DNA of 64,000 nt from Pocillopora damicornis. Lineage: Eukaryota. Below, in pieces: positions 38,901 through 41,900 of this stretch; position 1 is the first letter of the stretch; each line of letters starts with the position of its first letter. A program made the position numbers and the translations under genes. The notes under the pieces are model-generated. The model was not told where the DNA came from and made no database searches. It worked only from the letters and a program-made list of their open reading frames with translations. The stretch covers positions 744,001-808,000 of the forward strand of contig NW_020843829.1 in the NCBI RefSeq assembly GCF_003704095.1, written 5' to 3'.

Positions 38901-41900
38901 GCTCATCTTGTAAGCGTCTTGAAAGTCTGAACGTTAAAATAGCAATAGTCACAAATCCAGACCCCCTCAGATAAAAAGTTTCATCAAAACGAGAAACTCA
39001 ATACTATAAAAATACGAACAACATCAAATATCACCCTAGAACTGACGGTTACAACAATTCCATTTGTGACGAATATAAGAGATCCTCGCAACTATGAACA
39101 CTACTGAACTAGTAGTTGATATAATACCTGAAAAAAATTCAGGCCCGTACGGGATTTGAACCCATGACCTCTGCGATACCAGTACAGCCAACTGAGCTAA
39201 CAAGCCAACTGGGAGTTGGTAATTAAGTTGGGTCACGGTTGGTAGAGCGCTGCACCGGTATCGCATAGGTCATGGGTTCAAATCCCGTACGGGCCTGAAT
39301 TTTTTTCAGGTCTTATTTCAACTACTAGTTCAGTAGTGTTTATAGCTGCGAGGATCTCTTATATTCGTCTCTTCACAGCACTGCATATATACGATTTTCA
39401 TATATCTACAAACATAATTCCATTTGTGACTACGCAGTACACTGACCCAGATATTCATCCACATAATTCTGGATAAATTTCTGCATCGTTCGGTTATCTG
39501 CCATTACTGACGCTGCTTGTGAAGAGGAGGATAAATTGAGTGCACCTTGGAAGAGATAAATATAAAAATAGTAAAATACAGAGCGGTCTTCAAAGAAACA
39601 AACGAGACACCGTCATAAATATACAAATACAAGAGTATAACGCCCAACGTATCTGTATATTCAAGCCAATTGGTTGTCTGGCGTACAAGTTTGCGACTGA
39701 TGATCTCCAATAGAGAGATGAAATCAGCTATCATATGACGTTAGAAATAATGGGCTGTTATAATTTATAAGGGAGGTAGTTTTCTGAACAAAATGTGGTG
39801 CTGCGTTGATGGGGCATTACAAGAGGATTTCATTTTATCAGCTGGGTCGATAACGTAAATTGGCCGCCGTAAAAAATTTCTAAAGTTGACGTTTCGTGCG
39901 TTAGCCCTTCGTTAGAGCTAATCCTGTTATAACTGATGAAAAGAAACAGAAAGAGAGTTATGATGGCACTATATCAAGTACGTACTGATATGATCATCAA
40001 CATAAGCCTTCACGAAGCTCTTAATAGTGCGATTATTAAGCAGCTGAGGCTGTGACTGTTGGAGCTCTTGGGATGAAGAAATATTTAGTTCACCTAAAGA
40101 CGTAAAAAGAGCAACAAAACATGTACTGAAAGGACATTTCAAAACTCTCACACAAAGAAATTCTGAAAGGGACGAACAAATAAAACAAAATCACAGAAAA
40201 AAAAGCAAACAAACAAACAAAGACATGGCGTATTTACCCAAATACTCGTCTACATAAGCTCTGACAAAAGTCTGGATAGTGTAGTTATCTGGGAGTTTTG
40301 GCTGCGGTGCTGAAGAGGAAAAACGTTCTCACATCGTTAATGGTAATATATGATTAATATAAAATATTCTGAATCAAACTGCGAAAAAAAGGAAGAGGAA
40401 ACTGTGACTTGCAATTTACTTACTGGAACTGAGCTCTGTAGGTTGCCAGGTTTAGGAGTGGCTGTCCGTTGCAGCGGGATGTCTACATTATGCACTTATC
40501 ATAAACTACCAGAAGTCGTACAATTTTATTCTATCCATAAATGTAACCCATGAAATTCCTGCAATCAATTTCTATACTCATGTAGTTGGTGCAATGGTTT
40601 AAAAAAATATTTATGCTCTGGATATCATTCGTGCAATTCATGCCTCGCACAGTGCAAATTAACTATCGTGCTACTTAAGTTGCCTCAAGTCATGCATTAA
40701 GCAATTAAAAAAATGTAAACCATCAATGCAAGCAAATTAAACAAGGATTAAGATCAATTCATTTCCTTTCATGCATCATGTAAGAGAAGTAATTCATGCC
40801 ATTGATGCAAAACATGCTCATGCAATTCTGATGATGCATGCATTCATGCTAACTATGCAGTATGCAATGAAACCAATACACGCCGTATATTTAAGACTAT
40901 CATGCTTTTCAATGCATAATGTGCATTATGCAAGTTAAGCAACTCATGCTGCCTGTCATGCAATTTAAGTAATGCGCATTGTCAATCTAAATCATGCACC
41001 ATGCAATTACGGAAATTCATGCCATCTGAGGAAAGAATGCATCGTGCCCCTAAAAAAATATATTCTGTCCATTCAAATCTTGCATCATGCTAGCGACGTA
41101 GCTTTTGCCGTCCAAGGAAATCTTGCATAGCGCAATCGAAGTCAATCGCACCGCTTTTTTGCGCAATTATGTCGTCCGTTTCAAACCGAGGGGTGAGTTT
41201 TGTAATCAAATGCTCCGCGCAGTTGTTAACCATGTAATTTTAGAGCGTTCGGAATCACGACATTTGAGTGAGGCGTTTTCAGAACAGGCAAAAAATGGAT
41301 GGTTGTGAAAACGAAATAGTGACAAAGTAATGGAATGACAGCATACGTAGAGGTGAATGCATGGTGTTTTGACTCTTCTTCCTAAGGGAGAAGATATGTC
41401 AGATAGACCTTCTTCCGTTGAGGGTAGTTTAAGGCTTACCAGAGTCCCCTTTGTCTTCAAAAAACTTCATCAAAGACCGCGAAACAGAATCGTCTACAAA
41501 CATCTCCAATGGAGTCTTATCGCCAGGTCCTGAAGCGCCAGGTACAAACGAGGGACCTGCAATCAGTGACGAAGGATTCTTATCTTATAAACCTTCTGAA
41601 CGTTAATTTTGGCAAAGGAACTAAAAAAAATACCATATCGAAGGAAACGAGAACTTCGACACTTCACCAACATAGAATTCAATTCTCGACTGATACTCAT
41701 GCCCTGCATTAATATGTTTTAGTTCAGTGATGAAAAGATAGATGTTCGTTTATTTAATGTTTGTTACTTCAGAGGACCTTTCAGTGGCGCGAGTAAATCA
41801 AACTTCAGGGAGCTACAGAGGAGCCAGTGCGTTCTTGTACACTTGACCATTTAACTCCCAGAAGTGATCAACATGAAACTTCTCGCTATAATATCCTTAC

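Follow-up and report, generated by a model that had tools for sequence, protein, structure and literature searches.

Paired sense-oriented (U)GCAUG clusters at the ends of a mini-exon array, and selective retention of a cluster-bearing intron, in a Pocillopora membrane collagen gene

Splicing elements of the Fox-1/Rbfox type, (U)GCAUG, are often present in multiple copies, more copies having a stronger effect, and they act from the flanking introns over distances of up to about 1.5 kb (Kuroyanagi 2009, PMC2777236). Their effect follows a position rule: sites in the upstream intron repress the downstream exon, and sites in the downstream intron enhance. Multi-copy UGCAUG cases have been described in the intron downstream of fibronectin EIIIB, in the repeats about 1.5 kb downstream of NMHC-B exon N30, and in the intron upstream of F1-gamma exon 9 (Kuroyanagi 2009, PMC2777236). 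Here we describe two clusters of this word, U and D, in a stretch of 64,000 nucleotides from the coral Pocillopora damicornis (contig NW_020843829.1, positions 744,001 to 808,000; hereafter the window). U and D form a pair in two introns of about 1.1 kb at the two ends of a mini-exon array, in a gene for a type II membrane protein with collagen, Ig, sushi and D8C domains. The new fact reported here is that the U-bearing intron is selectively retained in poly(A) RNA. Judged from sequence, there is in our view an even chance that U is a functional multi-copy (U)GCAUG element of the Rbfox type, which would modulate the removal of the intron around it as well as exon choice.

U and D resemble the described Fox-1/Rbfox UGCAUG elements (PMC2777236) in that several sense copies are gathered within an intron, the gene being alternatively spliced, that they lie roughly 0.3-1.2 kb from splice sites, and that the factor family is present in the coral. 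They differ in their copy numbers, which are far higher (15 and 17), in the arrangement as two clusters around about 25 exons, and in that the exons adjoining them are apparently constitutive. Moreover, their host gene is lineage-restricted and belongs to a cnidarian. A full-text literature search found no study of Rbfox/GCAUG splicing in Nematostella or Cnidaria.

Two further systems invite comparison. Like retained or detained introns with a premature stop, the U intron has good splice sites and is still found in poly(A) RNA from which the neighbouring introns have been spliced out; unlike in those systems, in the coral the link between retention and the motif cluster is one that we infer. 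Dscam1-type mutually exclusive splicing relies on RNA pairing between docking site and selector sequences in tandem exon arrays. The coral gene shares with such arrays the duplicated tandem exons and a special intronic sequence at the border. In contrast to them, however, its exons are included one after another, and no docking/selector complementarity was found.

Two clusters of one orientation

The strand of the gene was set by GT-AG joints in RNA contigs together with protein mapping. As the gene lies on the minus strand, the plus-strand CATGC copies of both clusters read GCAUG in the pre-mRNA. The features concerned are the following:

41440..41556, minus strand: exon upstream of the U intron, 117 nt, ...FFEDKGDS, phase 1 at both ends, in all retrieved isoforms
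40310..41439, minus strand: U intron, 1130 nt
40630..41095, minus strand: U cluster, 15 GCAUG (7 UGCAUG, 12 GCAUGA) and 3 GCACG in pre-mRNA sense
40238..40309, minus strand: first array mini-exon, 72 nt, in all retrieved isoforms
30338..31526, minus strand: D intron, 1189 nt, carrying D and a decayed repeat exon near 31332-31400
30340..31100, minus strand: D cluster, 17 GCAUG, 15 of them UGCAUG; the copies span 30368-31068
30275..30337, minus strand: exon directly downstream of D, 63 nt
29085..29740, minus strand: tract T, 10 CAUGC in RNA sense; copies at 29107-29643 (10 plus-strand GCATG)

A direct motif count in 40630-41095 gave 15 plus-strand CATGC, 7 of them CATGCA, at 40639-41090. They start at 40639, 40691, 40770, 40795, 40813, 40819, 40837, 40845, 40901, 40945, 40957, 40993, 41000, 41018 and 41086. 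The opposite strand holds a single copy (40836, within a palindrome GCATGC), an asymmetry of 15:1. From the 80 plus-strand CATGC in the 64-kb window, 0.58 copies would be expected in 466 bp, and the Poisson probability of at least 15 is 1.3e-16. CATGC is also the most enriched 5-mer in U (26x) and TCATGC the most enriched 6-mer (53x). Each single one-off variant is far rarer than the 15 intact copies; the commonest are AATGC (4), TATGC (3) and CGTGC (3). The last of these reads GCACG in the pre-mRNA, which is a weaker known Rbfox word; the 3 copies in U, among 27 in the window, have the same orientation as GCAUG. Within its intron U occupies a middle position: the 5' splice site at 41439 is 349 nt away and the 3' splice site at 40310 is 329 nt away.

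D has a sense:antisense ratio of 17:2, and its last copy lies 30 nt ahead of the 3' splice site at 30338. Tandem Repeats Finder (TRF) detected a tandem repeat of 22 bp x 3.5 within D, at 30926-31002, and part of T likewise is a tandem repeat (32 bp x 3.9). T is located in the intron after the 63-nt exon, next to the D intron. Counted per intron, the U intron has 15 sense and 2 antisense GCAUG and the D intron 17 sense and 2 antisense, whereas the remaining 35 introns of the gene, 14.7 kb together, have 18 sense versus 19 antisense copies. When the window was divided into 500-bp bins, at least 4 copies were reached at three places only: U, D at 30.0-31.0 kb and the opposite-orientation tract at 29.0-29.5 kb.

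These counts agree well with an earlier sequence-only reading of the window. Its count for U (about 15 CATGC and about 7 CATGCA on the plus strand in ~460 bp) was exact, and D indeed has the orientation it had given, both clusters reading sense GCAUG. Its statement that neither the array nor the other genes hold comparable clusters is borne out by the 500-bp bins. It had further described the array as bracketed by two clusters without obvious alignment to each other. This was found as well: D is an independent sequence of the same orientation in the intron that follows the last array exon, and the best local alignment score of U with D was 30, compared with 25.4 +/- 2.7 for shuffles, 7/100 of which reached it. 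The placement of U 'immediately upstream' of the array has to be qualified: the intron precedes the first array exon, and the cluster lies in its middle, 329 nt from the 3' splice site.

In the 234-Mb assembly, U and D each match only themselves (E<=10). A transposon or dispersed repeat is thereby ruled out for both clusters, each being single copy. TRF at score 30 found no tandem repeat in 40630-41095, and a low-stringency repeat search in U returned motif-anchored families only (60-78% identity) with no periodicity of the spacers; a tandem repeat or minisatellite was rejected for U because no period was detectable. A common origin of U, D and T was rejected as well, since no alignment exceeded shuffles. 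CATGC triplets with gaps of up to 25 nt occur in the genome at the chance rate (228+228 versus 211+170 for the reversed control), and 5 of these 456 matches come from U. TGCATG triplets number 78+90 versus 11+36 and are mostly micro- or minisatellites; D supplies 7 of the 168. Non-tandem clusters as large as these are essentially unique in the 234-Mb genome. Outside the window, near the start of the same contig (C464:2266-2364), there is a small cluster of GCATGC palindromes on both strands.

Retention of the U intron and splicing of the array

Logan contigs from four poly(A) RNA runs of four studies were mapped on 36100-41750. In 4/4 runs the U intron is spanned end to end by genome-collinear contigs:

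40281-41469: X1 record 6, collinear across the U intron
40424-41557: X5 record 19, with a further 114 nt of spliced sequence upstream
X9 record 23: from the interior of the U intron into the first array exon, which is spliced to the second; X9 record 24 is also in the U intron
40281-40790 and 40815-41469: X17 records 12 and 13, in the U intron

The neighbouring intron bins 38746-38934 and 41581-41750 have a depth of 0 in all 4 runs, which rules out genomic DNA as the source of the contigs. The U intron, and no neighbouring one, is selectively retained in otherwise spliced sense poly(A) transcripts. Its splice sites look normal. Read-through into the intron yields ...KGDS-GKP-stop, with a TAA after 3 codons. 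Because of this early stop the retained form would give either a truncated membrane stub or a substrate for decay or detention. Contig ends fall exactly at 41440 and at about 40281-40310 in three runs, from which we infer that spliced and retained paths coexist. Depths of assembled contigs are not comparable and no retention ratios were derived from them. The exon upstream of U looks 2-3x deeper than the array exons, but given the incomparable depths, and as haplotype splitting would explain the difference, no conclusion was drawn from it.

The same contigs show how the array is spliced. Ten successive array exons are linked by minus-strand GT-AG joints. Thus the array is included and its exons are not mutually exclusive; a mutually exclusive exon array was rejected on these grounds and because the isoforms described below carry 17-25 array exons.

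The gene was recognised as Pocillopora 'uncharacterized protein LOC131781004' when one of its exons was used in an exhaustive protein search and a word search was then made. The encoded protein has a type II membrane anchor and N-glycosylated repeats of the form NxS...IQxFVxxYVDEYVG; according to the Pfam annotation of the retrieved records it also has a collagen stretch and Ig domains, together with one sushi and one D8C_UMOD domain. For the exon map, the protein was placed on the window and the splice sites were then refined. The array and its alternative parts are as follows:

31527..40309, minus strand: mini-exon array, about 25 symmetric phase-1 exons of 63-108 nt, spliced consecutively
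38345-38410 and 34852-34947, minus strand: alternative exons of the array
37811..34948 or 34722, minus strand: alternative sub-block of the array

All mapped array exons have lengths divisible by 3 and are in phase 1, and hence a skip of the block would preserve the reading frame. The collagen exon starts at 28466, after the T-bearing intron. The segment 31332-31400 in the D intron, which the earlier reading had taken as the last unit of the array, is a decayed repeat-exon copy that lacks a usable acceptor, contains an in-phase stop and is used by none of the retrieved isoforms.

The isoforms were compared by aligning six RefSeq records from the close relative P. verrucosa (isoforms X2 and X4-X7 and one earlier record; 1545-1790 aa). 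They differ in exon 38345-38410, in exon 34852-34947, in an internal block of 7 or 8 exons, in an alternative 3' splice site at 31592 and in a short G-rich indel. None of the six lacks any of the initial four or the final eleven array exons, and each isoform has 17-25 array exons. The alternative exons are located within the array, 1.6-6 kb downstream of U. A form of ~1090 aa, in which the whole array is skipped, was not among the six isoforms; rare skip junctions were not searched for.

Inside the array, the 7 sense GCAUG are confined to introns of the middle part that is spliced alternatively (34722-38578), and the remaining 14 array introns have 0 (binomial p about 0.005). The distribution of the antisense word is the same, 5 versus 0, and 3 of the copies are palindromes. 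For these two reasons the bias of the middle part was not counted as support for a role in splicing.

Some further observations concern the array. A 90-nt repeat exon at 38579-38668 is spliced in RNA contigs of 4/4 runs and is missing from the six P. verrucosa isoforms. At 35900-36038 there is an assembly gap, in which one P. verrucosa repeat exon that was not found in the window may sit. A repeat-exon copy at 35729 has an in-frame stop. An Rfam search of the introns found no known RNA families except one tRNA-like match, a tRNA-like element at 39141-39206 on the minus strand (Rfam tRNA, 30.1 bits). Around this element, at about 39124-39501, the RNA word depth is in the thousands, and the region may be a tRNA-derived dispersed repeat; 36478-36855 and 37801-37989 have a similarly high RNA word depth.

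An Rbfox gene in the coral and variation within the genus

A factor that could read the clusters is encoded in the genome. A degenerate peptide pattern of the Rbfox RNA recognition motif (RRM) was used for the search, and the match was then tested against PDB chains. The pattern matched one place, C172:126.4-128.3 kb, where three exons are collinear with residues 6-30, 31-48 and 49-80 of the Fox-1 RRM chain 4zka_A. For exons 1 and 2 the Fox-1/Rbfox/ASD-1 chains are the only PDB matches at E<=0.05; for exon 3 they are within 0.7 bits of the top-ranked chain, a multi-domain PABP. As three consecutive exons match the Fox-1/Rbfox RRM collinearly, the sequence identifies a coral Rbfox orthologue with a conserved RRM. 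The Pfam Fox-1_C domain had no match in the genome, nor in the control genomes, and is hence uninformative.

In the coral Rbfox gene itself (C172:128340-128600), a 185-nt stretch around a 70-nt exon, VNNATPRPHAKKSPGQNRGPLTNG, next to the RRM contains 5 sense GCAUG. Two of them are in the 110-nt intron before this exon and three just after it. By its layout, this group is a possible autoregulatory cassette.

For the variation of the clusters, 20 Pocillopora metagenome contigs, mostly from Tara samples by record name, were gathered by exact look-ups of intron and exon open reading frames (ORFs). U was present in 11 Pocillopora sequences (8 haplotypes, 98-99% identical), each with 15-16 GCAUG. 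D was present in 10 sequences with 16-17 copies, a set biased by the exact-ORF look-up. Outside the genus, an exhaustive HMMER search with the 127-aa exon returned only the gene's own cluster, and word searches, made with the complete protein, with the array region and with the exon ORF, returned P. verrucosa isoforms only, or nothing. No paralogue was found in the genome.

Possible roles of the clusters

If U and D are elements of the Rbfox type, the following could take place in cells that express Rbfox. The protein, possibly as a multimer on the many close sites, would bind U and D, and once bound would alter the speed and the manner in which the flanking splice sites are used. Removal of the U intron would thereby be delayed or permitted, and a transcript that retains it would encode a protein truncated after GDSGKP or would be marked for decay. 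Rbfox would also bias exon choice within the array, which would not be excised as one block. The clusters are probably an ordinary kind of splicing control in an unusually dense form, with no sign of a switch for the whole array.

The alternative to be taken most seriously is that the clusters are a neutral by-product, i. e. motif-rich, low-complexity DNA that arose by local duplication or slippage and has no role in splicing, the retention of the intron having another cause. On this explanation the clusters could, for example, be old minisatellites, or the separated parts of a single ATGC-rich ancestral intron within which the exon array expanded. We regard a neutral origin as possible, though somewhat doubtful. 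A number of observations favour it and weigh against a regulatory role of U. D is in part a plain 22-bp tandem repeat (x 3.5), T contains the 32-bp repeat (x 3.9), and pairs of repeats spaced by ~180 bp in U hint at one old duplication. T is a third ATGC-rich tract, of opposite orientation and in the intron after D, so that three such tracts of both orientations lie within 12 kb; this suggests a local tendency at the DNA level to generate ATGC-rich sequence. Both exons flanking U are present in 6/6 retrieved isoforms, so that U adjoins no exon that varies among them, although the U intron itself is the one retained in poly(A) RNA. The protein libraries searched contained no homologue of the N-terminal or array region outside Pocillopora, and conservation thus provides no evidence for function. 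Within the genus, U varies like its flanks: 13 sites differ inside the cluster and 19 elsewhere in the intron, which amounts to similar rates. Only 1 of the 13 falls in motif columns where 2.2 would be expected, a reduction that is not significant among sequences too similar to give power, and one RNA contig has two changes that destroy motifs (40695 and 41088).

Other features are not easily explained by a neutral origin. U has neither periodicity nor similarity between its spacers, yet its 15 pentamers are intact. U, D and T cannot be aligned with one another. U and D share the sense orientation, and the top word of both is the site of a conserved splicing factor that the genome encodes. Finally, there is the near absence of other non-tandem clusters of this size from the 234 Mb. 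Neutral motif-rich sequence nevertheless remains a serious rival, because no orthologue was found outside Pocillopora and the variation within the genus lacks statistical power.

The sequence-only reading had gone further and proposed control of the whole block: a multimerising protein, or pairing of the near-palindromic tracts, would loop out the 9-kb array and thereby switch between forms of ~1090 aa and ~1800 aa. Part of its Rbfox/bracket interpretation has stood, namely the strand-specific sense clusters, the second cluster, the Rbfox gene and a skip that would preserve the frame; block control and pairing have not. The geometry of the bracket is real and the skip would be in frame. In addition, one exon contig ends at 41440 and a separate contig enters the intron, from which alternative continuations could be deduced. 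However, none of the six P. verrucosa RefSeq isoforms skips the whole array; isoforms skip single exons or a sub-block, and in the contigs of 4 studies array exons are joined consecutively. D abuts, at 30 nt, the very 3' splice site that would be needed for the skip, and Rbfox sites upstream of an exon repress that exon (PMC2777236). The pairing variant fares no better, as U and D share no more complementary k-mers than dinucleotide shuffles do (longest Watson-Crick run 10 nt) and neither cluster folds better than its own shuffles (z +0.67 and +0.45). Looping out of the array by either means is therefore improbable in our judgement, although whole-block skipping is unsupported rather than refuted. 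Just as improbable would be a related role of the two clusters as joint boundary elements, on which cooperative Rbfox assemblies detain the flanking introns or excise the 9-kb block of ~25 exons in certain cell types. If true, this would mean that a non-bilaterian animal has a splicing switch acting on a whole exon array.

Complementarity between U, D and the 29085-29740 tract, whose co-folding had been proposed as a check, gave nothing for U with D but a signal for U with T. The GCAUGA-rich U could pair with the UCAUGC/CCAUGC-rich T and so join distant splice sites or promote back-splicing. Between U and T, complementary k-mers are more numerous than in dinucleotide shuffles (k=6: 354 versus 189 +/- 29, reached by 0/200; k=7: 117 versus 58 +/- 14), and the duplex energy has z = -2.1. 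Yet the longest perfect complement is 11 nt, the D-T signal is weak, and the signal amounts to one short word read in both orientations. No such joint was found among the best 15 of 49 RNA joints. A weak multi-site interaction of U with T is conceivable; that it bridges splice sites in this way is very unlikely. Looping of exons by an inverted repeat was rejected, as there is no long reverse-complementary match between the flanking introns.

Equally remote is a role at the DNA level, in which the clusters would be homotypic arrays of transcription factor sites that form an intronic enhancer. Both clusters are rich in ATGCAA (7x in U and 11x in D) and in octamer words resembling ATGCAAAT, and three CATGCAAAT are visible in the motif contexts of D. 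A strand bias of 15:1 and 17:2 is not expected of enhancer sites, however, and the core that is best preserved is CATGC and not the octamer.

What the clusters mean depends on whether they are bound by Rbfox. If they are neutral, they serve as a warning that a sequence without function can come to show extreme motif density and strand bias. If they are Rbfox-bound, the gene would offer a concrete and very strong candidate target on which to examine whether the (U)GCAUG/Rbfox splicing code operates in cnidarians. The code would then be linked to a fast-evolving, lineage-restricted surface glycoprotein whose number of repeats is varied by splicing, and also to the retention of a specific intron that truncates this protein.

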